Shown in pieces: positions 2,917 through 35,212 of a stretch of DNA of 35,501 nucleotides (within the stretch, counting starts at the first letter, position 1; each line of letters starts with the position of its first letter). The notes under the pieces were generated by a model. It saw nothing but the letters and a program-made list of their open reading frames with translations, searched no databases and was not told the origin of the DNA. Both the position numbers and the translations under genes were made by a program. The stretch lies in assembly GCA_002269645.1 (NCBI GenBank), contig NIVC01004768.1:1-35501 (forward strand), written 5' to 3'. This stretch comes from Macrostomum lignano. Its lineage: Eukaryota.

Positions 2917-4273
2917 AGACAGGGGGCTAGCAGGGGACAACAGGGGGCTAGCAGGGGACAACAGGGGGCTAGCAGGGGACAACAGGGAGCTAGCAAGGGA
3001 CAACAGGGGGCTAGCAGGGGACAGGGGGGCTAGCATGGGACAACAGGGAGCTAGCAAGGGACAGAGGGCTAACAGGGGACAGGGGCTAGCAAGGGACAGG
3101 AAGCTAGCAGGGACAACAACAGAGGGCTAGCAAGGGACAACAGGGGGCTAGCAAGGGACAACAGAGGGCTAGCGGTGGACAGGGGGGCTAGCAGGGGACA
3201 GGGGGGGCTAGCAGGGGACAACAGGGGGCTAGCAGGGGACAACAGGGGGCTAGCAGGGGACAGGGGGGGGCTAGCAGGGGACAGGGGGGGGGCTAGCAGG
3301 GGACAGGGTGGGCTAGCAGGGGACAGGGGCTAGCGGTGGACAGGGGGCTAGCAGGGGACAGGGGGCTAGCAGGGGACAGGGGCTAGCGGTGGACAGGGGG
3401 CTAGCAGGGGACAGGGGGCTAGCAGGGGACAGGGGGCTAGCAGGGAACAGGGGGCTAGCAGGGGACAACAGGGGGCTAGCAGGGGACAGGGGGCTAGCAG
3501 GGAACAGGGGCTAGCAGGGGACAACAGGGGGCTAGCAGGGGACAGGGGGCTAGCAGGGAACAGGGGCTAGCAGGGGACAACAGGGGGCTAGCAGGGGACA
3601 GGGGGGCTAGCAGGGGACAGGGGGGGGGGCTAGCAGGGGACAGGGTGGGCTAGCAGGGGACAGGGGCTAGCGGTGGACAGGGGGCTAGCAGGGGACAGGG
3701 GGCTAGCAGGGGACAGGGGGCTAGCAGGGAACAGGGGGCTAGCAGGGGACAACAGGGGGCTAGCAGGGGACAGGGGGCTAGCAGGGAACAGGGGCTAGCA
3801 GGGGACAACAGGGGGCTAGCAGGGGACAGGGGGCTAGCAGGGAACAGGGGCTAGCAGGGGACAACAGGGGGCTAGCAGGGGACAGGGGGCTAGCAGGGAA
3901 CAGGGGCTAGCAGGGGACAACAGGGGGCTAGCAGGGGACAGGGGGCTAGCAGGGGACAGGGGGCTAGCAGGGGACAACAGGGGGCTAGCAGGGGACAACA
4001 GGGGCTAGCAGGGGACAGGGGGCTAGCAGGGGACAGGGGGCTAGCAGGGGACAACAGGGGCTAGCAGGGGACAGGGGGCTAGCAGGGGACGGGGGCTAGC
4101 AGGGGACAACAGGGGGCTAGCAGGGGACAAGGGGCTAGCAGGGGACAACAGGGGGCTAGCAGGGGACAGGGGCTAGCGGGACAGGGGGCTAGCAGGGGAG
4201 CAGGGGGGGGGCTAGCAGGGGACAGGGGGCTAGCAGGGGACAACAGTGGGCTAGCAGGGGACAGGAGGGGGGC
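2917..4273. repeat. Intronic G-rich minisatellite, 18/21-bp unit GGGGGCTAGCAGGGGACA(ACA)
   Basis: Tandem array of ~1.35 kb read directly. Confidence 0.97.
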
Positions 4274-5606: not shown

Positions 5607-7341
5607 GAATACGCGTTCAGCGTCACAGGGCGCGCTTCAAAGCCAGGTCGCGAATGAATGCCACGCCGCCGGCCGAATCCGGGGCGCCGGCGTCAGCCAG
5701 CAGGCAGTCGACGAAACGCCGAGTGCGCGTCTGCCCCCGCCGGTAGGGTGCCTGCAGCGTTAGCAGCAGCACCTCCTGCACCGGCTGTGGGCAGTACGAC
5801 TCGGCGCGGATGATGTGGCCTGCCAGCTGGAGTCGCCGACGGCGCAACAGGTCGCTTGGACGGACCAGGCCGGCGCGGCGATATAAAGCCGCGCTGGTCA
5901 CTCGCTCGTAGCCGATCCTGAAGGCGGCGCGCAGCAGGCCAGCATGCGCCGCGTCAACTTGTTGTTCGAGCGACTCCGTCAGCGTCCAGGTCTCGACGTT
6001 GTACAGCAGGTCGGTCTCGATTACCGCCTGGAACAACGCTGCCTTCTGGCGGTCAGGTACCTGCAGGACTGCAGGACTGCCCTCACAGAACGAAAGGCAG
6101 CCCAGGCAAGCCCGCGGCGAAGCCGCAAATCCTCGCGGACGCCGGGAACCAGACTGCCGAGGTAGACGAACTGCTGACAACGCGGAAACTGTGTCGCCTG
6201 TCCATCAGCACCTCGACACAAAATCGCAGCCTTGATGTCGTCCGGCACGCAGAGCACGACGGTCCTCTGCGTGTTGACCACCAGGCCGACACTCGCCGCA
6301 ACAGCAACTAGCTTGTCCAGTTGTCGCTGGGCGCCATCGACAGTTGAGGACAGCAGGGCGGGGTCGTCGGCGTAGCCAAGCAGGCTGAGCCGACTCTCCG
6401 GTTGACGTCGACCCACGCGTCGCCGCAACAGAAAGCCGTCGTCGTTGGTAGGAAGAGTGGTCCGCAGCACCCAGTCAAGCATCAGAACGAACAGGAACGG
6501 CGCAGGCGTATCTTCTTGAAGCACTCCGGAGGATGTCTCAAAGAAGTCCGATAGGCCGTCCGGTGTTGAAACAGCAGCTTTCGGATCACGGTACATCGCC
6601 ATGATGGCAGAAATCAGCTACTCTGGCACGTTGTACGCACGGAGCATCTTTGGGAGCACAGATCTGGCGACCGAGTCGAATGCCTTGTTGAAATCTATGA
6701 AGATAACAATCAGGATCGACTGGCGTATCCGTACTTCCTCAATTACTCGCCGAAGAGCCAGGATCTGCGTCACTGTGCCGCGATGGGGCCGGAAGCCGTT
6801 CTGCTCAGGACGCAGGTACTGATTCAGCACGGGCTGCAACCACGATAGCAGAATCCGGTTGAATAACTTCGCAGCGCAGGACTGAAGGCAGATACCTCGA
6901 TGCTCCTCAAGCCTCGTGGTGCTCGGCTTCTTAGGAACTGCGACGATATGTGCGCCGTGATCCATTTGTTGGGTGCCTCCTCACCGAAGAGTACGCGATT
7001 CATCACTCTGGCGACCTCACTGGCCACATAGTGGATGCACAGCGCCTCAATGGGCACCTCGTCCGGATTCAGCGCTTTCCCGCCCGGTGACTGTTGGGCG
7101 AGCCTCTCACAACGTTGGGTGTGCTGACTGGTACTAGGCTGAAGCTCTCTTCTGCCGGCAACGGCACCTCCGGCGACAGCGTCAGACTGTCTGGCAGCGG
7201 ATGTGGCGGCGTGTTGACAATGGCGGCGAAGAACTCACGCAGCTCGTTCCTGCGTTCGTCCGCGGTGTCGCCTGTCAGGTTTAGCGGAAAGCTTTCGCCC
7301 CGTCAAAGCATTGATAGCCGACCAGGCCACGCGGCTCTTAC
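5551..7341 (-). mobile_element. 5'-truncated, inactivated non-LTR retrotransposon (RTE-type LINE), reverse transcriptase and C-terminal region
   Basis: Frame pieces 6824-7057, 6618-6965, 6021-6602 and 5623-6180 carry RT motifs QNGFRPHRG, FIDFNKAFDSV, GVLQEDTPAPFLF (decayed from GVLQGDTLAP), YADD, FVYLGS and the RTE-like C-terminus RRRLQLAGHIIR with no CCHC finger; frameshifts; simple-repeat tail; no endonuclease part. Confidence 0.92.
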
Positions 7342-14554: not shown

Positions 14555-16895
14555 TCAGCTGTTGCTGTGCCGTCACGGCTAAGCGGCATTGGGCAATATG
14601 CAAAAGAATCTTTTACGACAGAACCGGGTCTGTGGGCTCGAATAAGATGCTTCCTTTCAGTTCTAGCCCTCGCTCTACTGTAAGGACTGAAAACATTTTG
14701 CTTTTGAAATCTGCTGTTCTTTTCAGTCGACTTGTCTGTAGAATCCCTTGGCATTTTTGTCCAGGCCTACTATATGAAAGGTCCCGCGATAGTTTCGCGT
14801 CCAGTGATGCTGTGACGTTTTATTTCTTTGTTGCACTATTAGATTCGATTTTCTACCTTTTTGCCTTCTTTGCTATCTGATTCGTGAGAACATCGCTATT
14901 ATCCATATGGAAGATATTGCCTACTCATTTATCTTGAGTAGCTATCAAAGTCATCCCATTATATGTGCCTATATGGGCATTGCTTTTTAGCGCTCACAAA
15001 TTACTTGCCTCTAATCGCCATCGATTACCACCTCCACTAGCCTCCATTATCATTCATTGACATTATACTAACTAATCATCCACTACATTTGTCTGTAAGA
15101 TTCGTTTCTAATCGAAGCATTTACTAGATTCTCTGGTTCTCTGATCTGCTCTGGTCTATAATGATCCACTAGATTGGTCTCTAATGATCCACTAGATTGG
15201 TCTCTAATGATATACTAGATTCGTCTCTAATGATATACTAGATTCGTCTCTAATGATATACTAGATTTGTCTCTAATGATCCACTAGATTCATCTCTAAT
15301 GATCCACTAGATTAATCTCTAACGATCCACTAGATTAATCTCCAATGATCCACTAGATTCGTCTCTAATGATCCACTAGATTTGTCTCTAATGATCCACT
15401 AGATTCATCTTTAATGATCCACTAGATTAATCTCTAACGATCCACTAGATTCGTCTCTAATGATATACTAGATTTGTTTCTAATGATCCACTAGATTAAT
15501 CTCTAATGATCCACTAGATTCGTCTCTAATGATCCACTATATTAATATCTAATAACCCACTAGATTAATTTCTACGAGCGTAATGATCCACTAGATTAAT
15601 CTCTAATGAGCCACTATATTAATATATAATGATCCACTAGATTCGTCTCTAATTATCCACTAGATTCGTCTCTAATTATCCACTAGATTCGTCTCTAATG
15701 ATCCACTAGATTGGTTTCTAATTATTCACCAGATTAGTCTCTAATTATCCACTAGATTTGTCTCTAATGATCCACTAGATTAATCTCTAATGATCCGCTA
15801 GATTAATCTCTAATGGTCCACTATATTAATATATAATGATCCACTAGATTCGTCTCTAATTATCCACTAGATTCGTCTCTAATTATCCACTAGATTAATC
15901 TCTAATTATCCACTAGATTCGTCTCTAATAATCCGCTAGATTAATCTCTAATGGTCCACTATATTAATATATAATGATCCACTAGATTCGTCTCTAATTA
16001 TCCACTAGATTCGTCTCTAATAATCCACTAGATTAATCTCTAATTATCCACTAGATTCGTCTCTAATAATCCGCTAGATTAATCTCTAATGGTCCACTAT
16101 ATTAATATATAATGATCCACTAGATTCGTCTCTAATTATCCACTAGATTCGTCTCTAATTATCCACTAGATTCGTCTCTAATAATCCACTAGATTAATCT
16201 CTAATAATCCACTAGATTAATCTCTAATTATCCACTAGATTCGTCTCTAATGATTCACTAGATTCGTCTCTAATAATCCACTAGATTTGTCTCTAATTAT
16301 CCACTAGATTCGTCTCTAATTATCCACTAGATTCGTCTCTAATTATCCACTAGATTAATCTCTAATTATCCACTAGATTAATCTCTAATTATCCACTAGA
16401 TTAATCTCTAATCTTTCTGTAGATTAATATTTAATCGTTCACTAGATTCGTCTCTAATCCTGCACTAGATTAGATCTGGTCTTTGAATCGCCCAGGAAAA
16501 TCACCGAATCTAAAAAATTCCCATCTTCAAGTTGACGTGAATCGCATTAATTATAGGCTTCAAGGCAATATTATGCGATTTATAGTTTATTAAAGTTATG
16601 CCATATTTGGTATAGTTAATTACAGTTTTACGCTGGATTAGGGATTTATATAGTTTAGAAACTGCATAGGAGCGTACTGGTGTGCCAATTTCGGCACCAA
16701 GTTTAGTCTACTCTAATTAGACCAAGCTTATTTCCTCAGTTGGAATGCCTCTGGAAGGCGGCTTCTTTGGGACATTCAGATTTTTAGGGCCTAGATGTGT
16801 GCTTTTTCTCTTGAATTTATTTATATTTGTTTATAGGCGACCAGTCTGGCGAGTCGAAGGCCCTATATAATAAATTGCGCAGCTTTGAGCTCTGA
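14555..16895 (+). CDS. Putative unannotated multi-exon gene (candidate exons 14555-14679, from 14727, 16740-16796, 16837-16895); product unknown
   Basis: Phase-compatible 47-nt (GTAAGG…TTTTCAG) and 40-nt (GTGTGC…TTTATAG) introns join open frames SGIGQYAKESFTTEPGLWARIRCFLSVLALALLRLVCRIPW and GMPLEGGFFGTFRFLGPRCDQSGESKALYNKLRSFEL*; middle exons unresolved. Confidence 0.3.
15159..16472. repeat. Minisatellite, 23-bp unit AATGATCCACTAGATTCGTCTCT
   Basis: Tandem array of ~1.3 kb read directly. Confidence 0.97.
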
Positions 16896-18800: not shown

Positions 18801-19730
18801 ATGCGGCCGCTTCTGCTGCCGCTGCTACTATCGCTACTGCTGCTGCCTGTCCGGCCGACTGACGCCGCCGCCACACCGGCCACCTGTCAGTCCGTGTCGG
18901 CCGTTTACGCAGCCAAGAATCTGGACGTACTGCAGGTGCGATACCAGGCCTCGGGCAGTCACCTGGCCGTCTGTCCGGCCCGGCCGGGTCCCTCCTGTTG
19001 CAGTCGGGAGATGGAAACTGCTCTAGAGAATCGGGCCAAGACTGACATGTACCAGGATCTGTACCAGCATCTGGTGCCTCAGAGCACCTCGTTGGCCTCT
19101 CTGCTGACTAGCTTTCAGTCTCTGGCCCTACAGATGGTTAACAATTCCTACACGAAACTGGACACGAGTTTCAAGAGCATCTACGGCTACTCTTATATTG
19201 AGAATAAGCAGCCGTTTCTGCAATTCTTCGAAGGCTTGCGAGCCTACTTGTCCGGCGGACCGGATACTGTGGCCGGAGTTGCCAAGGCCCTGTTCGAAAG
19301 CATCTCCTCTCGGGTGTACGTACTAGTCATGACCAACTATGACATTGATGAGGCCTATCTGACCTGCGTCCGCAGCCGCCTGGACCAGCTAAAGCCTTTA
19401 GGCAACATGCCCGAGCGTATTAGCCAAGAACTTATCCGGGCATTCGTGCCCGCTCGCCGATTCCTGGCCGGGTTGGCCGCGCTGCAGGACGCCGTTCAGA
19501 TGTCCCCGGCCACTCCGCTGCCCGCTCAGTGCCAGAAATCGCAGTTGCGCTCTCGATATTGCGCCTGGTGCGACGGGATTACAAATCTGCAGCCGTGCTT
19601 TGAGCTGTGCTCAGCCTCTATGGCCGACTGTCTCACCCAGTTGGACTCGCTGGCCGAACCATTCGACCAGCTTTTGGACGAGTTGGTCAAGCTGTCCAAT
19701 AAGATCCGGGGTCCAAATAACCTCTACCAG
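18801..19730 (+). CDS. Glypican, coding exon 1 (310 codons; GPC1/2/4/6-dally-like type)
   Basis: Signal peptide MRPLLLPLLLSLLLLP; glypican motifs GSHLAVCP, SCCSREME, YCAWC, PCFELC; cysteines 1-11 of the 14-Cys core; donor CAG|GTAATG, phase 0. Confidence 0.93.
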
Positions 19731-19818
19731 GTAATGGGTTGCTGTAGGCTATCTAGACTTACGGTTCTGCAACGGGGTGTTGTATTGAGTCAATTGTATT
19801 GAGTTTCTATGGTGTATT

Positions 19819-20430
19819 AAGATTCTGGATTGTCAAGATTCTAGGGTGTGAAGATTCTTGGGTGTGAAGATTCTTGGTTGTGAAGATTCTGGGTTGTGAA
19901 GATTCTTGGGTGTGAAGATTCTGGGTTGTAAAGATTCTTGGGTGTGAAGATTCTAGGTTATGAAGATTCTGGGTTGTGAGGATTCTAGGTTGTGAAGATT
20001 CTTGGGTGTGAAGATTCTTGGGTGTGAATATTCTGGGTTGTGAAGATTCTGGGTTATGAAGATTCTTTGGCGTGAAGATTCTGGGGTTGTGAAGATTCTG
20101 AGTTAGGAAGATTGTAGGTTGTGAAGATTCTGAGTTAGAAAGATTGTAGGTTGTGATGATTCTGGGTTGTGAAGATTCAAGATTGTGAAGATCCTGGGTT
20201 GTGAAGATTCTGGGTTGTGAGGATTCTAGGTTGTGAAGATTCTGGGTTGTGAAGATTCTAGGCTGTGAAGATTCTGGGTTCTGAAGTTTCTTAGGTGTGA
20301 AGATTCTGGGTTGTGAAGACCTTGGGGTGTGAAGATTCTGAGTTAGGAAGATTGTAGGTCGTGAAGATTGTGGGTTGTAAAGATTCTTAGTTGTGGAGGA
20401 GATTCAGGGTGTGAAAATTCTGGGGTGTAA
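19819..20430. repeat. Glypican intron minisatellite, 16-17-bp unit GATTCTGGGTTGTGAA
   Basis: Tandem array read directly. Confidence 0.95.
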
Positions 20431-20542
20431 AAAATATAATGTAAAGATTGCGGAGGTTTCAGCCGCTTATTTATATAAGCTTCGCGGACACAGTCGTCAA
20501 CTTTAAAATTTGATTATTTTTTGTCCAAAAACCAACGCGCAG

Positions 20543-22296
20543 GTGCTGGAAAACCTGGGCCTGCGCATCAGCGCCGGCATCATGGACATGCAGGAGCGCA
20601 AGGACCACATCCAGACTGAGGTGGCCAAACTGTGCGGCCCGCCCAAGCTTAAAGCCAATGGCTCGCCTTCCATCGTGCCGCCGCCGCTGCCTCGGCCCGG
20701 CCGAGGTCGCCGACGTCGCCGCCGCGCCTCCATGTTCGGCTGGAACTACCGCAACAGCGATGATGCGCCAGGGCCCAGCAGCCAAGCCCAGGAGCGGCTG
20801 GACGAGCTGGGCCTCACCGCTAAGCGAAGCCTGCCCGCCAGCCGGAGCCTGTTCAGGCCCAGCAGCCTGGCCAAGCGCTTTTGCAAGGCCGACCCGGCCC
20901 CGCCTGGACGCTGCTGGAACGGCACCGACTCCGCCGCTGGCTACACGGCGCCAGCGTCGACGGTAGCGTCGCCAGTAGAGCCGCCTACACTGGCCGTGTC
21001 TCAGCGGGTGGCCAATCTGCGCGCCGCTCACCGGCTTCTAGCCGAGCTGCCTAAAAGCGAAAGCTTTGCCGGCTTCGTCGAGCAGCCGCTGGATCCAACG
21101 CTTAGGGGCCTGCTTAATAAACGCGCCAGAGTGGCGTCTAGCATTGGCAGTTCCGGCCCCAGCCTGACAGACGCTTTGCCTATCGGCGCCGCTACTAGTG
21201 GCGCCGGCCTCGGTTCCGGCAGCGGCGCCGCTCCTCCGCCCGTGCCGGTGGCCCCTCGGCCTCGCCCGCCCGCCGGCGGATTTCCGCGCCGGCTTTCAAC
21301 TCTGCCTCCGCTGACCCGGCCGCCGCCTGCTGGCGTAGTTGATTCTTGGCGTCCGTTGCCGCCAATTCGGCCGCGCCCAGACACGGCCGGGTCCGGCGAT
21401 GCCGCCGGTCCGCCGCCAAGGCCAGGGGTCTGGGTACCCCCGCCTGCAGCCACCCGGGAGCCACCGGCGCCGCCTGCAACCCGCTGGCCACCGCTGCCGC
21501 CTGCGACCCGCTGGCCACCGCTGCCGCCTGCGACCCGTTGGCCACCGCTGCCGCCTGCGACCCGTTGGCCACCGCTGCCGCCCCCGCAGCCGCCCGTTGT
21601 TGACGGAAGCTCCACAGTTGCTCCGCTGCCTTGGCGGCCGCCACCCGTTAACCCAGGCCTCGGCTCCGGCGACGAAGAGCGGCCGCCACCCCGTCCGGGG
21701 TGTTCGTCCCGGCTCTGCCCACCGCCAGCTCTTCCTCTTCATCCACATCCGGCCCACTCGTGCCCGGCGGCGTCTCTTCGGGCGACGGCGAGCCAACCGG
21801 GCCTCCGCCGCCGCCTCGGCCGGTTCCGTCCGGCTGGCCGTGGCCGCCTATCGTCGACGTCGGCGGCGGCGAGACCTCCGGCGACGGTGAATTGCCGCCC
21901 CCAGTGGCGCCGCCTCAGCCACCGTCACCGCCAACCGAGTCCTGGTGGACGCCCCGGCCGCCGGTACAGCCGCAGCCGCCCCGGAAGCCGGCCACCCGCT
22001 GGCCGCCGCAGCCGCCCCGCCAGCCGCCCCGCCAGCCGCCCACCCGCTGGCCGCCGGTCATCCCCGGCCCGCCGCCCGGCGGTGACCTGTGGCTGCCCAA
22101 AGAGCCGGACGATCAAGGCGGAGCGGAGCGCGGCCGCGGCGAAGGCTCCATCCACGGCCCGATGAAGATGACCAGCGCCAAGCGGGCCTGCCCGCCAGGC
22201 TCCCCGGCCTGTCCGGCCTGCCGCCCGCTGGCCGCCTCGGCCGGGACTCTCCTGCTGCTGGCCGGTCTGCAGCGGCTGCTTATGCTGCTGCGCTGA
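20543..22296 (+). CDS. Glypican, coding exon 2 (with a 1-nt frameshift at 21697-21700): end of the Cys core, polybasic site, long Pro/Trp-rich stalk with Ser-Gly sites, GPI-type signal
   Basis: CGCGCAG acceptor in phase 0; LRISAGIMDMQ…LCG, FCK and CWNG give cysteines 12-14; restoring one G joins ORF 20510-22165 to ORF 21700-22296, which ends in the hydrophobic LAASAGTLLLLAGLQRLLMLLR*; corrected protein 894 aa. Confidence 0.85.
21469..21585 (+). repeat. Coding 27-bp tandem repeat in the glypican stalk (PPATRWPPL x4)
   Basis: CCGCCTGCGACCCGCTGGCCACCGCTG units, in frame. Confidence 0.9.
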
Positions 22297-23239: not shown

Positions 23240-23611
23240 TGTCACCCCCATGGTCCTTCAGCGGGAGCCGCTGCCTCCCCCCCCATGGTCCTTCAGCGGG
23301 AGCCGCTGTCTCCCCCCATGGTCCTTCAGCGGTAGCCGCTGTCACCCCCCATGGTCCTTCAGCGGGAGCCGCTGTCACCCCCATGGTCCTTCAGCGGTAG
23401 CCGCTGTCACCCCCATGGTCCTTCAGCGGGAGTCGCTGTCTCCCCCCATGGTCCTTCAGCGGTAGCCGCTGTCACCCCCATGGTCCTTCAGCGGGAGTCG
23501 CTGTCTCCCCCCATGGTCCTTCAGCGGGAGTCGCTGTCTCCCCCCATGGTCCTTCAGCGGGAGTCGCTGTCTCCCCCCAATGGTCCTTCAGCGCAGTCGC
23601 TGTCTCCCCCC
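23240..23611. repeat. Minisatellite, ~33-bp unit CCCCCATGGTCCTTCAGCGGGAGCCGCTGTCA
   Basis: Tandem array; units carry a CAGCGG-NAG-CCGCTG hairpin, imperfect in the later units. Confidence 0.95.
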
Positions 23612-24137
23612 GGTCAGTCACAATTCTTTTCCATTTGGCCTTGTTGTGACCTCCCAACAGAATTCCTGTATGCATTGGATAGGGCAAGGACAGTCTTTAT
23701 ACAGACTATTTGGACTCAGACATGAATCGCTGTAGTCATTGGCGAAAGTATACGATTCGTTTTCGAACAGAGCACTCGCTGATGTAAGAAGTCTGCACGC
23801 GAATAAACGAGCTTGAATGAGCAATTAAGTTGAGCAGAATAGGTATGCCATAAAATATTAAATGCAGACAGAATTGCCTATAATGTGGTAGGGTTGGCTT
23901 ATTTAGCTCGTGAGCTTTAGAAAGAATGTGTGCAAACTCTTGTTGATGGCACTGGCCATTCTTTGCTGCTTTTGTGGACAGGGGCTCTTAATGACTGTTA
24001 AAAGGTTTTAGTCTTTTTTTCTTGTGTCTTCTGCAAGTTTTACAGCGTCTGCAATAGTTTCTCTTAAATTTGAATCTCTGCTGGCATTCCCTTCATAATA
24101 AATTCCATCGTAGTTTATCCAATGTAGCTTACGAGTA

Positions 24138-24480
24138 GGTAGAGTAGGGACTGCCCCTGAAGAGTCTGAGGTAGAGTAGGGACTGCCCCTGAAGAGTCTG
24201 AGGTAGAGTAGGGACTGCCCCTGAAGAGTCGGAGGTAGAGTAGGGGCTGTCCCTGAAGAGTCGGAGGTAGAGTAGCGGCTGCCCCTGAAGAGTCGGAGGT
24301 AGAGTAGCGGCTGTCCCTGAAGAGTCGGAGGTAGAGTAGCGGCTGTCCCTGAAGAGTCGGAGGTAGAGTAGCGGCTGTCCCTGAAGAGTCGGAGGTAGAG
24401 TAGCGGCTGTCCCTGAAGAGTCGGAGGTAGAGTAGCGGCTGTCCCTGAAGAGTCGGAGGTAGAGTAGCGGCTGTCCCTGA
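24138..24480. repeat. Minisatellite, 32-bp unit GTCCCTGAAGAGTCGGAGGTAGAGTAGCGGCT
   Basis: Tandem array read directly. Confidence 0.95.
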
Positions 24481-25493
24481 AAGGCACAGAGGTTCCATTG
24501 ATTTTGCTGAAAGCAACACGGAAATTCAAGCTCAGTAAGGCTTAGGGAGAAGAGAAGAAAGTGTTTCATTGCTGTAGGGATTTTCTGTGATGCCTCTGCT
24601 TTGTCGATCGCTTGCTAATTATTTATTGCACTGTCGAGTTTTTTCTTCGAGTTGTTTTTGTTTTAATTTTACAACGTGCTCGTCTTTTTAAACTGCTGCT
24701 TTAACTGATTCTTTGAAACGAAGCTTAGTTTGTACTATTATAAATAACTGAGTTCCTTACAACGCGGGGTTTTCGAATATCATTCGAATCTAGGTCTGTT
24801 TTTAACTGTTTGTTTAAACACGTTTTTTGAATTGAGCATATTTGACTGCAGAACAATGGGTCCGATAACTTATGAAATTTTATGGCTGCTTTTTCACAAG
24901 TATTTTTACAATACTTTCCTCAGCTCTCTTTTACTAACTTTATATTATATGCGTACTTCTTGCTAAATCGCACCTTAATTCTATACTGATTATTAATAAA
25001 AATAATTGCTAATCTTTAGTCTTCGAAGCGACTTCATTGTGCGACTTACAATATTGAATTATGTAGGCTACAGTTGATATTGCTGCCTTTTAGTTTCTTT
25101 TTATCACCTTGTTTTGCACAGGTTTTTCTGTTTTTACTATCGATATGATTAGTAATCATGTGCTTTTTGCTATTCTATCTAGCAACGAAGGGTCACTGCG
25201 TATATTATTATTAAAATCTAGCGTATCTTGCTTTGTTTTATTACAAAACAACTTTTTTTAACATTTTTCAAACTTGCAAACACGAGCAAACAAAACAATG
25301 AACCTGCAGCGCTTCGTCTGTAGTGCTTCAAAATAGTAATTCACATGCGGTCAAGCTATATTTTGTTGTTTTATAAACGCCTATTAACTACAAATATATT
25401 ATTACTATTATTATGCATATACCGTCATCCGTTGCGAACAAATATGAAAAAAAAAGCACTTTGTTATTACTGATAATTGTTTTCCTTTTAAGA

Positions 25494-25897
25494 AGAGCCC
25501 ATAAGGACTGATAAAGAGCGGATAAGAACTGATAAGGAGCCGATAGGAACTGATAAGGAGCCGATAAGAACTGATAAGGAGCCGATAAGAACTGATAAGT
25601 AGCCGGTAAGAACTGATAAAGAGCCGATAAGAACTGATAAGAGCCGGTAAGAACTGATAAGGAGCCGATAAGAACTGATAAGGAGCCGGTAAGAACTGAT
25701 AAGGAGCCGATAAGAACTGATAAGGAGCCGGTAAGAACTGATAAGGAGCCGATAAGAACTGATAAGAGCCGATAAGGAGCCGGTAAGAACTGATAAGGAG
25801 CCGATAAGAACTGATTAAGAGCCGATAAGGAGCCGGTAAGAACTGATAAGGAGCCGATAAGAACTGATTAAGAGCCGATAAGGAGCCGGTAAGAACT
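25494..25897. repeat. Minisatellite, 21-bp unit GATAAGAACTGATAAGGAGCC
   Basis: Tandem array read directly. Confidence 0.95.
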
Positions 25898-26530: not shown

Positions 26531-26995
26531 CTGACACCCATATCAGCCCTACTGACACCCATGTCATCCCCACTGACACCCATGTCATCCCCACTGACAC
26601 CCATGTCAGCCCTACTGACACCCATATCAGCCCTACTGACACCCATATCAGCCCCACTGACACCCATGTCAGCCCTACTGACACCCATGTCAACCCTACT
26701 GACACCCACGTCATCCCTACTGACACCCACGTCATCCCTACTGACACCCATGTCAGCCCCACTGACACCCATGTCAACCCTACTGACACCCACGTCATCC
26801 CTACTGACACCCACGTCATCCCTACTGACACCCACGTCATCCCTACTGACACCCACGTCATCCCTACTGACACCCATGTCAGCCCCACTGACACCCATGT
26901 CAACCCTACTGACACCCACGTCATCCCTACTGACACCCACGTCATCCCTACTGACACCCATGTCAGCCCTACTGACACCCATGTCATCCCTACTG
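26531..26995. repeat. Minisatellite, 21-bp unit CCCTACTGACACCCAYGTCAN
   Basis: Tandem array; stop-free in several frames, giving ORFs 26477-27090. Confidence 0.95.
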
Positions 26996-27449: not shown

Positions 27450-28187
27450 CAGCGGGTGTTGATTCCCCTCTCCTTGTACACCAGCGGGTGCTGCTTCCCC
27501 TCTCCTTGTGCACCAGCGGTGCTGCTTCCCCTCTGCATTGTACACCAGCGGGTGCTGATTCCCCTCTCCTTGTACACCAGCGGGTGCTGCTTCCCCTCTC
27601 CTTGTGCACCAGCGGGTGCTGCTTCCCCTCTCCTTGTACACCAGCGGGTGTTGATTCCCCTCTGCATTGTACACCAGCGGGTGTTGATTCCCTCTGCATT
27701 GTACACCAGCGGGTGCTGATTCCCCTCTGCTTTGTACACCAGTGGGTGCTGATTCTCCTCTGCATTGTACACCAGCGGGTGCTGCTTCCCCTCTCCTTGT
27801 GCACCAGCGGGTGCTGCTTCCCCTCTGCATTGTACACCAGCGGGTGTTGATTCCCCTCTGCATTGTACACCAGCGGGTGCTGATTCCCCTCTGCATTGTA
27901 CACCAGCGGGTGTTGATTCCCCTCTGCATTGTACACCAGCGGGTGCTGATTCTCCTCTGCATTGTACACTAGCGGGTGCTGCTTCCCCTCTCCTTGTACA
28001 CCAGCGGGTGCTGATTCCTCTCTGCATTGTACACCAGCGGGTGCTGATTCCTCTCTGCATTGTACACTAGCGGGTGCTGATTTCCCTCTGCATTGTACAC
28101 CAGCGGGTGCTGATTCCTCTCTGCATTGTACACCAGCGGGTGCTGATTCCTCTCTGCATTGTACACTAGCGGGTGCTGATTCCCCTC
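27450..28187. repeat. Minisatellite, ~33-bp unit CTGCATTGTACACCAGCGGGTGCTGATTCCCCT
   Basis: Tandem array read directly. Confidence 0.95.
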
Positions 28188-28213
28188 TTATGGCAGCTAT
28201 AAAGAAAGGCCGC

Positions 28214-29379: not shown

Positions 29380-30326
29380 CACACTTTACCACCCTTTTAC
29401 CACCCTATTTACCACACTCTATCTACCACACTCTTTCCCACCCTTTTTACTGCAATCTTTATCGAACTCTTTACCACACTCTTTACTACACTTTATCACA
29501 CTCTTTGTCACACTCTTTACCACACTCTTTACTACACTTTATCACACTCTTTGTCACACTCTTTACCACACTCTTTATTACCCTCTTTACCACACTCTTT
29601 ACCACACTTCATCACCCTCTTTGTCACCAGTGGCGGATCCTGGGGGGGGGGCCAAGGGGGCCATGGCCCCCCTCAGCTGCCTCGAAAAAAATTCTGCTCT
29701 TGGCCTTTGGCCCCCTTCTAAGTAAAGAAAGGGCTTGGGCCTTGGGGTGGGTTCCTACTCGGGGCAGTATGAAAAAATTTGGCCCCCCCCTCAAGAAATT
29801 CCCGGATCCGCGCCTGTTTGTCACACTCTTTATCACCCTCTTTACCACACTCTTTATCACCCTCTTTACCACACTTTTTACCACACTCTTTACCACACTC
29901 TTTATCACCCTCTTTACCACACTCTTTAATCACCCTCTTTACCACACTCTTTATCACCTTCTTTACCACACTCTTTATCACACTCTTTACCACACTCTTT
30001 ATCACCCTCTTTACCACACTCTTTACCACACTCTTTATCACCCTCTTTACCACACTCTTTACCACCCTCTTTACCACACTCTTTACCACACTCTTTACCA
30101 CACTCTTTATCACCCTCTTTACCACACTCTTTACCACACTCTTTACCACACTCTTTACCACCCTCTTTACCACACTCTTTACCACACTCTTTATCACACT
30201 CTTTACCACACTCTTTACCACACTCTTTACCACACTCTTTACCACACTCTTTACCACACTCTTTACCACACTCTTTACCACACTCTTTACCACACTCTTT
30301 ACCACACTCTTTACCACACTCTTTCC
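29380..30326. repeat. Minisatellite, 12-bp unit ACCACACTCTTT, interrupted by a MITE
   Basis: Tandem array on both sides of 29628-29816. Confidence 0.95.
29628..29816. mobile_element. hAT-like MITE, 189 bp
   Basis: TIRs CAGTGGCGGATCC / CAGGCGCGGATCC (11/13) with subterminal G-run+GGCC motifs; perfect 8-bp TSD TTTGTCAC at 29620-29627 and 29817-29824. Confidence 0.9.
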
Positions 30327-31014
30327 CACCCTTTCTCTTTCTCACACTCTTTCTCATTTTTTGCCATCCTCTGTTTCCCACCATCTCCTCAGCCTCTCTC
30401 CCACCTTTTTTCTGTCGCCCTTGGTTCCTATTTTCACTTCTTGGCCAATTGTCGCTAGCCTGCAATGTACATGTACGAGGGCAATATTAATTTTTAATCT
30501 AGTTTCTCTTTGTACTACTTCGATGTCTTTCGGTTTCCATCCATTCACCGCAATGAAAGCTAAACAATAAAAATCTCATACGCTAAATTTTGTCTCTATA
30601 TTTCACAAGATTGCTCAGCAATGAACTCCCTCCATGGCGAGTCAAGGGCCGCTCTCGTGAGCCTGCTGCAGGTCGGGGCAACCCCCTTTTGTTAGACTGA
30701 ATTGTTCTCAGCGTTGTAACTCGTACACCAGCCAGCAGAGACTTTAAACAAACCTGTAGCTTTAGTCTCTGCAGCCACCCCTGCGCTCTCTTCTCACACC
30801 CCGAGTAGCCAAGGACTTCAGCGTGTAACTATATGGACTGCATAGTTATAACAGATTGTTTAATTGTTTAATTGAAATTATAGTAGGACTTTTTTTTACC
30901 AGTTTCCAATCCAGATCTCTGTTAGCCTCCATTAGTAGTCCATAAATAATTCGCGCGTGCGCCAGGCTCGGAGACGAGAGATAGGACGGGGCGGTCCCCA
31001 GCTGCAGAATACAA

Positions 31015-32188: not shown

Positions 32189-32246
32189 ATGAATTCTGGC
32201 AACCTAAATCATAAAAAAGCATTCCCAACTGCCCTCACTCGAACAG

Positions 32247-32378
32247 GTGTATTCTTCATACCGTATTTGCTGATGGTATTCCTGTGCGTGATCCCCATAG
32301 TCTACCTGGAGATGATTATTGGCCAGTTCTCATCTGCGTCGACTCTGCAGTTCGGGCGAGTCATCCCGCTGTTCCAGG
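32247..32378 (+). CDS. SLC6 coding exon 2 (TM2)
   Basis: (G)VFFIPYLLMVFLCVIPIVYLEMIIGQFSSASTLQFGRVIPLFQ; AACAG acceptor, G|GTGAGG donor, phase 1/1. Confidence 0.93.
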
Positions 32379-32452
32379 GTGAGGTTCTGCGCCTGATGGC
32401 TTTCTTCTAATTGTAGAAGAGGATAAATTATGAATTTTAGTTTTTTTCGCAG

Positions 32453-32596
32453 GAATTGGCTGGGCAATGTTCATCGTGACCTTCTTTACCATAATATACT
32501 ATCAAATTGTGCTGTCCTGGGTTGTGTACTACCTGTTCAGCTCTTTGACGGCCCAATTGCCTTTTGGACACTGCAATAATACCTGGAATACGCCTG
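32453..32596 (+). CDS. SLC6 coding exon 3 (TM3, start of EL2)
   Basis: (G)IGWAMFIVTFFTIIYYQIVLSWVVYYLFSSLTAQLPFGHCNNTWNTP; TTTCGCAG acceptor, G|GTGAGT donor. Confidence 0.93.
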
Positions 32597-33575
32597 GTGA
32601 GTGTGGCTCATCAACAGGGGTGAGGGCGGCTCAGCAACAGGGGTGAGTGTGGCTCGTCAACAGGGGTGAGGGTGGCCTCATCAACAGGGGTGAGGGTGGC
32701 CTCATCAACAGGGGTGAGGGTGGCCTCATCAACAGGGGTGAGTGTGGCTCGTCAACAGGGGTGAGGGTGGCCTCATCAACAGGGTGAGGGTGGCCTCATC
32801 AACAGGGATGAGGGTGGCCTCATCAACAGGGGTGAGGGTGGCTCATCAACAGGGGTGAGGGTGGCCTCATCAACAGGGGTGAGGGTGGCCTCATCAACAG
32901 GGGTGAGGGTGGCCTCATCAACAGGGGTGAGGGTGGCCTCATCAACAAGGGTGAGGGTGGCCTCATCAACAGGGGTGAGGGTGGCTCGTCAACAGGGGTG
33001 AGGGCGGCTCGTCAACAGGGGTGAGGGTGGCCTTATTAACAGGGGTGAGGGTGGCCTTATTAACAGGGGTGAGGGTGGCCTCATCAACAGGGATGAGGGT
33101 GGCCTCGTCAACAGGGGTGAGGGTGGCCTTATTAACAGGGGTGAGGGTGGCCTCATCAACAGGGGTGAGGGTGGCCTCATCAACAGGGGTGAGGGTGGCC
33201 TCATCAACAGGGATGAGGGTGGCCTCATCAACAGGGGTGAGGGTGGCTCATCAACAGGGGTGAGGGCGGCTCGTCAACAGGGGTGAGGGTGGCCTTATTA
33301 ACAGGGGTGAGGGTGGCCTCATCAACAGGGGTGAGGGTGGCTCATCAACAGGGGTGAGGGTGGCTCATCAACAGGGGTGAGGGTGGCTCATCAACAGGGG
33401 TGAGGGCGGCTCATCAACAGGGTGAGGGCGGCTCATCAACAGGGGTGAGGGCGGCTCATCAACAGTGGTGAGGGTGGCTCGTCAACAGGGGTGAGGGCGG
33501 CTCATCAACAGGGGTGAGGGCGGCTCAGAAACAGGGGTGAGGGCGGCTCATCAACAGGGGTGAGGGCGGCTCGTC
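32597..33575. repeat. SLC6 intron 3 minisatellite, 24-bp unit GGCCTCATCAACAGGGGTGAGGGT
   Basis: Tandem array whose first unit overlaps the authentic donor. Confidence 0.96.
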
Positions 33576-34360: not shown

Positions 34361-34481
34361 TCTGTGTTTTCCCAGCTGTGTTGCCCCGCTTGAATTTCTG
34401 TATTTTAAATGCTAAATTTCTCACACTGATTTTCGCCCTAGATTTCCCAGCTAAAGTTACCTATGTACATCCCTATTTCAG

Positions 34482-34614
34482 GTTCTTTGTTCTGGCCGAA
34501 TCGGGCGACATCGGCATCCTAGGCGAGATCAACTGGCGACTGGCGCTGAGTCTGCTGTTCGCCTGGGCCTGCGTCTTCGTCGTGCTGTTTCAGAGCGTCA
34601 CTTCGCCGAAGAAG
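34482..34614 (+). CDS. SLC6 coding exon 5 (TM4)
   Basis: (R)FFVLAESGDIGILGEINWRLALSLLFAWACVFVVLFQSVTSPKK; ATTTCAG acceptor, AAG|GTGAGC donor. Confidence 0.92.
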
Positions 34615-34705
34615 GTGAGCAACTTTAAATATGATCATATGGGGTGGGATCACCCAAGCCCGAGACCGTGCATCAAGCTAGGGTCACCGTTACCGCAAAC
34701 CGCAG

Positions 34706-34845: not shown

Positions 34846-35212
<367 letters not shown>

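Follow-up and report, generated by a model that had tools for sequence, protein, structure and literature searches.

The 35,501-nucleotide (nt) stretch of Macrostomum lignano DNA analysed here, called the window below, is the entire contig NIVC01004768.1 of assembly GCA_002269645.1 (Mlig_3_7). On its plus strand it holds a glypican gene of two exons and one intron, whose product has an exceptionally long, proline-rich region with several Ser-Gly sites between the cysteine-rich core and the membrane anchor. Glypicans modulate the gradients of Wnt, Hedgehog, BMP and FGF, and textbook models put their sugar chains near the membrane. The evidence presented here probably describes a flatworm-lineage glypican with a long tether, the frame of which is broken in the window by a one-base deletion at a G run.

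Judged from its sequence, the gene product is a genuine glypican, as a preliminary description of the window, made from the letters alone, had proposed; glypicans are glycosylphosphatidylinositol (GPI)-anchored, heparan-sulfate-type proteoglycans. The Pfam Glypican profile (PF01153) matches amino acids (aa) 10-446 with a score of 255.8 bits, well over the cut-off of 26.4 (E=1.2e-75), and a search of PDB returned glypican-1, Dlp, glypican-2 and glypican-3, including the solved human glypican-1 (4acr; E=1.2e-41, aa 21-358) and Drosophila Dally-like (3odn; E=1e-37). The first exon supplies the start codon, the signal peptide (Leu-rich, aa 1 to ~22, MRPLLLPLLLSLLLLPVRPTDA, recognized by inspection), the N-terminal two-thirds of the core and 11 of the 14 conserved cysteines; its product is identical to the public models P0001 and P0002. 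Three Macrostomum-type sequences have all fourteen cysteines (C29, 58, 66, 67, 189, 244, 254, 257, 266, 270, 277, 341, 424 and 434) in common, and 12 of them are also invariant when cestode and trematode cores are compared, as is C434-W435-x-G437. Position 20912, at which the preliminary description began the tail, is indeed the codon of the last core cysteine, that of the CWNG motif. The conserved polybasic stretch RGRRRRRR appears to occupy the position where glypicans have the convertase site that splits the core into alpha and beta subunits.

The region around the frame break is 73% GC and contains long open reading frames (ORFs) on either strand and in more than one frame, so that their length was not accepted as an argument for coding; frames were assigned through conservation in orthologues. 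Two close relatives, P0004 (860 aa, SRR28338165) and P0005 (887 aa, SRR30276804), are 56-68% identical to the M. lignano protein over the whole length; with it they make up the three species compared below. Each has an unbroken ORF, on a contig of 2.8-2.9 kb, that continues through the point at which M. lignano has its intron. The simplest reading of these contigs, from their sequences, is that they represent spliced transcripts; a look at their ends for poly(A) or a spliced leader gave nothing decisive. In the window, the acceptor at 20543 is the sole one with a stop-free junction, joining NNLYQ to VLENLG.

The broken frame and the other gene copies

The preliminary description gave the protein 894 aa. 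This length is encoded by two further copies of the gene in the same assembly, both in frame, on contigs NIVC01000037.1 (locus L001, protein P0001) and NIVC01000350.1 (L004, P0006). In the window, however, it is not one continuous frame: the sum 310 + 386 + 198 = 894 needs a frame step at 21700 that the description did not declare. The core frame entered at 20543 passes after ~21700 into an Arg-rich, hydrophilic end without a GPI signal and reaches its stop at 22163-22165; the public model of the contig, identified by protein search (P0002 = PAA46627.1, BOX15_Mlig034224g1, 841 aa), uses this frame. The SSGDGE and TSGDGE sites, like the hydrophobic C-terminus, belong to a different frame (21700..22296), the product of which is identical to aa 698-894 of P0001. 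An alignment of the three copies shows the gap, the window reading CCGGGG-TGTTC where L001 has CCGGGGATGTTC (Met) and L004 has CCGGGGGTGTTC (Val). With the base restored, the window gives the same 894-aa protein except for four residues.

Compared with L001, the window has 5 substitutions and this 1 single-base gap in the 3.7-kb gene region; L004 is ~95% identical. On these comparisons, the locus is likely one of three near-identical copies in the redundant assembly of the neopolyploid M. lignano. Two non-synonymous changes are private to the window with respect to both other copies, A399G (20811; ELALT to ELGLT) and G529S (21197); the latter creates the extra TSG in TSGAGLGSGSG, a Ser-Gly that is copy-specific and not conserved. 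The intron consists mostly of a tandem array of 38 copies of a 16-nt unit (19819-20428; unit AAGATTCTGGGTTGTG), which is base-for-base the same in the window and NIVC01000037.1 despite a difference of ~1% in the extragenic flanks, and is heavily diverged in NIVC01000350.1.

As to the origin of the frame break, we lean toward an assembly error, namely a residual PacBio consensus error at the G run. The gap is the sole indel in 2,685 coding bases and falls at a G run within 73% GC sequence, a weak spot both for PacBio consensus and for the polishing of duplicates. Downstream of 21701 there are 0 differences between the window and L001, hence no second disabling change. Moreover, P0003, a model from an older assembly of the same PacBio data, contains many frame errors in exon 2. 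The present assembly was built by Canu from PacBio reads and corrected by Pilon, with polishing by Illumina and RNA-seq reads, and its duplicated blocks of at least 95% identity total 180 Mb (PMC5730564). Such near-identical duplicated blocks are where short-read polishing is weakest.

A less probable, though still serious, alternative is that the frameshift is true and recent, so that a redundant third copy is now either a young pseudogene or the source of a soluble glypican without GPI anchor. Such a product would be without Ser-Gly sites 4 and 5 as well as the conserved membrane-proximal block and the anchor, and would gain a 154-aa Arg-rich tail. In a neopolyploid genome two intact copies could shelter such a null, and the public annotation does use the frameshifted frame. 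Also in favour of this alternative, the assembly was polished with Illumina and RNA-seq reads, and indels between the window and L001 are frequent in the non-coding flanks (~13 in 6.7 kb), which shows genuine indel differences between the copies; against it, the coding region has only this one, and the older assembly has the frame errors named above. The protein publicly annotated for the window contig is probably an artefact of assembly or the product of a dead copy, and users of the gene are better served by the two intact copies.

Rescue at the mRNA level, either by programmed ribosomal frameshifting or by a 29-nt GT..AG mini-intron (21700-21728, with GT at 21700-21701 and AG at 21727-21728) that would keep the GPI-anchored product, was considered and rejected as very improbable: removal of this segment does join the frames, RPG being followed directly by SSSSSTSG exactly as in P0003, but the other two copies code through it in frame (VFVPALPTA or MFVPALPTA), residues that can be aligned with it are encoded in both relatives, 29 nt is far below the average intron of 1.1-1.4 kb in this genome (PMC5730564), and the P0003 junction is most simply a patch by a gene predictor over a frame error. 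No signal for ribosomal frameshifting was noticed, although no search aimed at one was made.

Composition and conservation of the tail

Behind C434 the protein has a tail of 460 aa with 26% Pro and 15 Trp, 14 of them beyond the CWNG motif. All motifs listed by the preliminary description are present: ATRWPP (four times), WRP, WVPP, WPWPP, TSGAGLGSGSG, GSGD, GSGDEE, SSGDGE and TSGDGE. The description regarded ~430 aa of this tail as stalk. The region between core and anchor is indeed exceptionally long and Pro-rich, but the first ~70 aa after CWNG are predicted to form core helices rather than stalk, and the Pro-rich linker proper measures ~290-330 aa. An AlphaFold2 run on the alignment of three sequences, with a mean predicted local distance difference test (pLDDT) score of 39.8 and hence too poor for a fold search, predicted helices to about aa 502, no secondary structure at aa 503-878 and a helix at 879-893. 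This model is uninformative for the idea of a rigid polyproline rod; such a rod, along with the morphogen capture and the adhesive role proposed with it, may exist but stays at the level of suggestion. The linker at aa ~540-824 has 36% Pro, a net charge of +10 and a longest Pro-free gap of 15 residues, and carries Ser-Gly sites 2-5 and a Ser-rich run.

Ser-Gly dipeptides are enriched in the tail, with 9 observed and 3.8 expected from shuffles of the tail (p=0.008); for acid-flanked Ser-Gly the figures are 4 and 0.46 (p=0.0006). Both relatives likewise show Ser-Gly enrichment over shuffles. The sites span aa 535-756 of 894 and are thus not confined to a short membrane-adjacent segment as in typical glypicans. 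Confinement of glycosaminoglycan (GAG) sites near the membrane is a trait of architecture and not a criterion for membership in the family. The dispersal noted in the preliminary description stands in that site positions are conserved in three species; the first cluster, GLGSGSG (aa 532-538), is nevertheless core-proximal, ~100 aa past C434, which is the usual position of glypican GAG sites just after the core. The expanded part is a spacer inserted between the first Ser-Gly cluster and the anchor.

The tails of the relatives have 424 and 436 aa and 25-26% Pro. Among the three species (P0001 numbering), invariant columns make up 53% of the core, 43% of aa 435-525, 29% of the linker at 526-824 and 74% of a block at 825-858; the corresponding ratios of non-synonymous to synonymous rates (dN/dS) are 0.19-0.23, 0.27-0.28, 0.37-0.39 (a rough estimate) and 0.06-0.17. 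The 87 invariant linker positions comprise 55 Pro and 32 non-Pro residues, the latter out of 195, and about half of these 32 fall at Ser-Gly sites: GSGSG 534-538, GSGD 593-596, SG..EPT 723-729 and SG 756-757. By these sequence comparisons, the length of the tail, its Pro content and the positions of the five Ser-Gly sites are conserved, and the Trp-rich repeats are not. Because they are conserved across the three species, the dispersed sites are, in our opinion, likely to be used.

The Trp-rich repeats, to which the preliminary description gave weight, fare differently: beyond CWNG the tail contains 14 Trp in M. lignano and 3 in each relative, and repeats specific to M. lignano cannot be a conserved functional feature. 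Sequence comparison marks the ATRWPPLPP repeats as a recent tandem expansion in this species. It should be noted that PAA46627.1 contains 3 ATRWPPLPP units and the contig DNA 4, so that the annotated coding sequence must skip 27 nt within the array. This mismatch may reflect variation in repeat number among copies or transcripts, or an artefact of mapping.

There is no sign that the stalk is spliced out. It lies within the relatives' uninterrupted ORFs and is included in the M. lignano gene models, which are transcriptome-guided (PMC5730564).

The 34-aa block near the membrane is more conserved than the core itself, and behind it follows a GPI-attachment-type signal with a Kyte-Doolittle window maximum of 2.05, which is conserved in the relatives and includes the C-terminal helix of the low-confidence model. 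By hydropathy and inspection, both intact copies encode this end, as does the shifted frame of the window, whereas the frame in which the window sequence continues does not. The positions of all these features are collected in Table 1.

Table 1. Elements of the M. lignano glypican gene, with positions in the window
Feature	Position	Strand	Basis or remark
Exon 1 (aa 1-310)	18801..19730	+	ORF, GT donor at 19731
Single intron, GT..AG, 812 nt	19731..20542	+	Tandem Repeats Finder (TRF); splice-junction check
Exon 2, core-frame part (aa 311-696): core end, first three Ser-Gly sites, ATRWPPLPP repeats	20543..21700	+	ORF, public models
Polybasic RGRRRRRR (aa 363-370), candidate furin/convertase site	20699..20722	+	Conserved in three species
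Cys434 (TGC), 14th and final core cysteine (CWNG)	20912..20914	+	Invariant in alignments A1 and A3
Core-proximal Ser-Gly cluster GLGSGSG (S535, S537)	21206..21226	+	G534-S535-G536-S537-G538 invariant, three species
Ser-Gly site 2, AGSGD (S594)	21386..21400	+	G593-S594-G595-D596 invariant
27-nt x 4.6 tandem array encoding (ATRWPPLPP)x4	21460..21582	+	TRF, 95% matches; gap in both relatives
Ser-Gly site 3, GLGSGDEE (S685)	21656..21679	+	Aligned to GRGSGDGE and EGSGSGR in A1; alignment-dependent in A3
Frameshift point GGGG/T, one base absent after 21700	21697..21701	+	Compared with NIVC01000037.1 and NIVC01000350.1
Exon 2, shifted-frame part (aa 697-894 and stop): Ser-rich run, sites 4 and 5, conserved block, GPI-type signal	21700..22296	+	ORFs
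Ser-Gly site 4, SSGDGE (S723)	21775..21792	+	S723-G724..E727-P728-T729 invariant
Ser-Gly site 5, ETSGDGE (S756)	21871..21891	+	S756-G757 invariant
Conserved membrane-proximal block DLWLPKEPDDQGGAERGRGEGSIHGPMKMTSAKR (aa 825-858), holding [ILVM]W[ILVM]P	22084..22185	+	Alignment
Stop codon without frame correction	22163..22165	+	850 aa as assembled; 841 aa in public model
GPI-attachment-type signal: small residues AASAG, then hydrophobic end TLLLLAGLQRLLMLLR	22186..22293	+	Inspection, alignment

Flatworm distribution and a possible role for the tether

Word-indexed searches with the full protein, the core and a profile of four flatworm cores found only M. lignano and the two close relatives, and no named planarian or schistosome glypicans. 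For this reason, the survey of tail length rests on a profile-free, exhaustive search of 1.84 billion representatives with exon 1 as the query. It gave 550 glypicans; the best 150 were examined, and filtering for the CW.G motif and a hydrophobic C-terminus left 54 complete glypicans, to which the following figures refer. The median length of the tail after the CW.G cysteine is 168.5 aa (interquartile range (IQR) 151-211) and that of the whole protein 611 aa (IQR 579-661); the latter bears out the typical glypican size assumed in the preliminary description. M. lignano has the longest tail and by far the most Pro. The next-longest tails are those of flatworms, namely the cestode Spirometra sp. 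(417 aa) and the trematode Calicophoron daubneyi (374 aa), and a trematode-like sequence has 262 aa. Several representatives of 756-776 aa, which we presume may be insect Dlp, carry their extra length before the last core cysteine and have tails of 208-221 aa, unlike M. lignano, where all of the extra length is in the tail. Stalks of this kind are thus not routine in invertebrates generally but are shared among flatworms, and on this sequence evidence the long tether most probably characterizes the flatworm lineage, reaching its extreme in Macrostomum without being unique to it.

The flatworm sequences also share a motif. [ILVM]W[ILVM]P stands 48-74 aa from the C-terminus in all of them, including the two close relatives and a second, divergent M. 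lignano paralogue, P0044, and was found near the C-terminus of none of the non-flatworm glypicans among the 150 representatives examined. In Spirometra sp. (KAL7062525.1, 870 aa) and C. daubneyi (CAL8086319.1, 815 aa) it lies ~53-56 aa from the end. These two proteins resemble that of M. lignano in their long tails, dispersed Ser-Gly and scattered Trp; they differ in having 9-14% Pro as opposed to 26%, in lacking ATRWPPLPP, and in sharing only the core of the membrane-proximal block. Two models from outside the window call for separate mention. P0044 (UniProt A0A1I8GT19) has the same membrane-proximal block, and its model, from the older assembly, looks frame-damaged. P0159 (Sparganum proliferum BHF59384.1), a model of 1128 aa, is apparently a glypican fused to a downstream gene. 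A search for literature on flatworm glypican tails (Macrostomum, planarian, Schistosoma), the gene identifiers and the run accessions found nothing on this architecture, the proteins themselves being already public as hypothetical 'Glypican' entries.

Like human glypican-1 (PDB 4acr, 4ywt) and vertebrate glypicans in general, the M. lignano protein has a helical core with 14 cysteines, a Ser-Gly cluster soon after the core and a GPI-type C-terminus. Typical glypicans, however, have ~150-210 aa after the last core cysteine, and in vertebrate GPC1 the Ser-Gly cluster is a few tens of residues from the anchor; in M. lignano the cluster is ~330 residues away, and the intervening linker contributes its high Pro content and four extra, spread Ser-Gly sites. 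Drosophila Dally-like (PDB 3odn, 6xtz), homologous in the core, is also an unusually long invertebrate glypican. More distant parallels are offered by syndecans and trypanosome procyclins, in which GAG chains or an acidic coat are arranged along an extended, Pro-rich, non-globular stalk. The likeness to the M. lignano tail is by analogy: syndecans are transmembrane proteins, procyclins have neither GAG chains nor a globular core, and neither is homologous to glypican.

LON-2 of Caenorhabditis elegans offers, again by analogy, the best precedent for regarding the tail as a module with a function. Besides a furin site, this glypican has an unstructured C-terminal region of 86 aa that is linked to GPI and bears two GAG sites; the region is active alone if glycanated and anchored (PMC3875644). 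The comparable region of M. lignano has ~390 aa and five site positions.

By its sequence, the intact protein comprises, in order, the signal peptide, a core of 14 cysteines that is predicted to be helical to ~aa 500 and includes the polybasic site, the Ser-Gly cluster, the spacer, the conserved block and the GPI-type signal. We infer the following as the most likely mechanism. The spacer (~290 aa, ~36% Pro, without predicted secondary structure and with four further acid-flanked Ser-Gly sites) would act as an extended, disordered, GAG-studded tether, keeping the core, together with the canonical chain cluster, at a distance of tens of nanometres from the membrane. It would also add chains along its length in the manner of a bottle brush, giving up to five groups of GAG chains. 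The conserved membrane-proximal block may be a separate functional element, for example a docking or shedding site. Selection would act on length, Pro content and Ser-Gly sites and not on the sequence between them; for this reason the spacer would be free to absorb tandem-repeat expansions such as ATRWPPLPP x4.

Several points count against this interpretation. The survey covered the best 150 of the 550 matches with simple filters, and planarian glypicans fall outside that sample. The AlphaFold2 model is poor, and low confidence in the tail does not separate disorder from a lack of information. The Ser-Gly sites are candidate GAG sites, recognized by sequence, and their chains may be heparan or chondroitin sulfate. 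That the relatives' contigs represent cDNA is read from the absence of the intron. The linker dN/dS is rough, given a dS of ~1-1.5 and an uncertain alignment of low-complexity sequence, and site 3 is aligned differently in A1 and in A3.

It is also conceivable, although in our view unlikely, that the Pro-rich tail, for all its length, serves no function itself and arose by neutral repeat slippage in a GC-rich genome prone to repeats, tolerated in a disordered linker; what matters would then be limited to the core, the anchor and the first Ser-Gly cluster. Tandem repeats abound here, making up 31% of the window and 15% of the genome (PMC5730564), and the tail itself includes a recent, species-specific 27-nt array, in which the public model is one unit short of the DNA. 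Outside the Ser-Gly sites and the Pro residues, conservation of the linker is poor, with 32 invariants among 195 non-Pro positions. Against this reading, a length of 424-460 aa and 25-26% Pro are kept in three species at a dS of at least 1, the four extra acid-flanked Ser-Gly sites hold their positions, and the linker dN/dS of ~0.38 is below 1. The long tails of the cestode and trematode, together with the motif near the anchor, point to an old, retained feature.

A broader proposal, which we consider decidedly speculative and improbable as it stands, is that flatworm glypicans constitute an architectural subclass with a GAG-studded tether of 260-460 aa and a conserved membrane-proximal module for specific docking or regulated shedding, the tether fixing the distance from the cell surface at which Wnt, Hedgehog and BMP ligands are retained and serving as an adjustable element of positional signalling in regenerating flatworms. 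The module of this subclass would be [ILVM]W[ILVM]P, with the longer form DLWLPKEPDDQGGAE..GEGSIHGPMKMT in Macrostomum.

If the tether reading is correct, a lineage with its chain cluster hundreds of residues from the anchor and extra chains along the tether provides a natural test of what the length of a tether and the placement of its chains do to morphogen handling. M. lignano is a transgenic, regenerating model, in which the question of the tether is testable.

Repeats and neighbouring genes of the contig

The tandem repeats of the contig form many unrelated arrays with units of 4-82 nt, accompanied by long spurious ORFs on both strands; their coverage fits the tandem-repeat content of the genome (PMC5730564). 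Examples are found at 291-697, 1029-1452, 2094-2612, 2918-4271, 15154-16473, 23245-23611 and 24137-24481, and further ones at 25495-25882, 26531-26995, 27450-28188, 29822-30329, 32596-33570 and 34846-35212.

Upstream of the glypican gene, a weak RVT_1 match on the minus strand (6021-6602; E=8e-6, under the gathering score) looks like a degraded retroelement fragment. Downstream, two plus-strand segments match the Pfam SNF profile (sodium:neurotransmitter symporter family), one at 32243-32380 (profile positions 36-82, E=2.6e-9) and one, below threshold, at 34450-34620 (profile positions 150-206, E=0.0017). The two are probably exons of an SLC6 transporter gene separated by repeat-filled introns.

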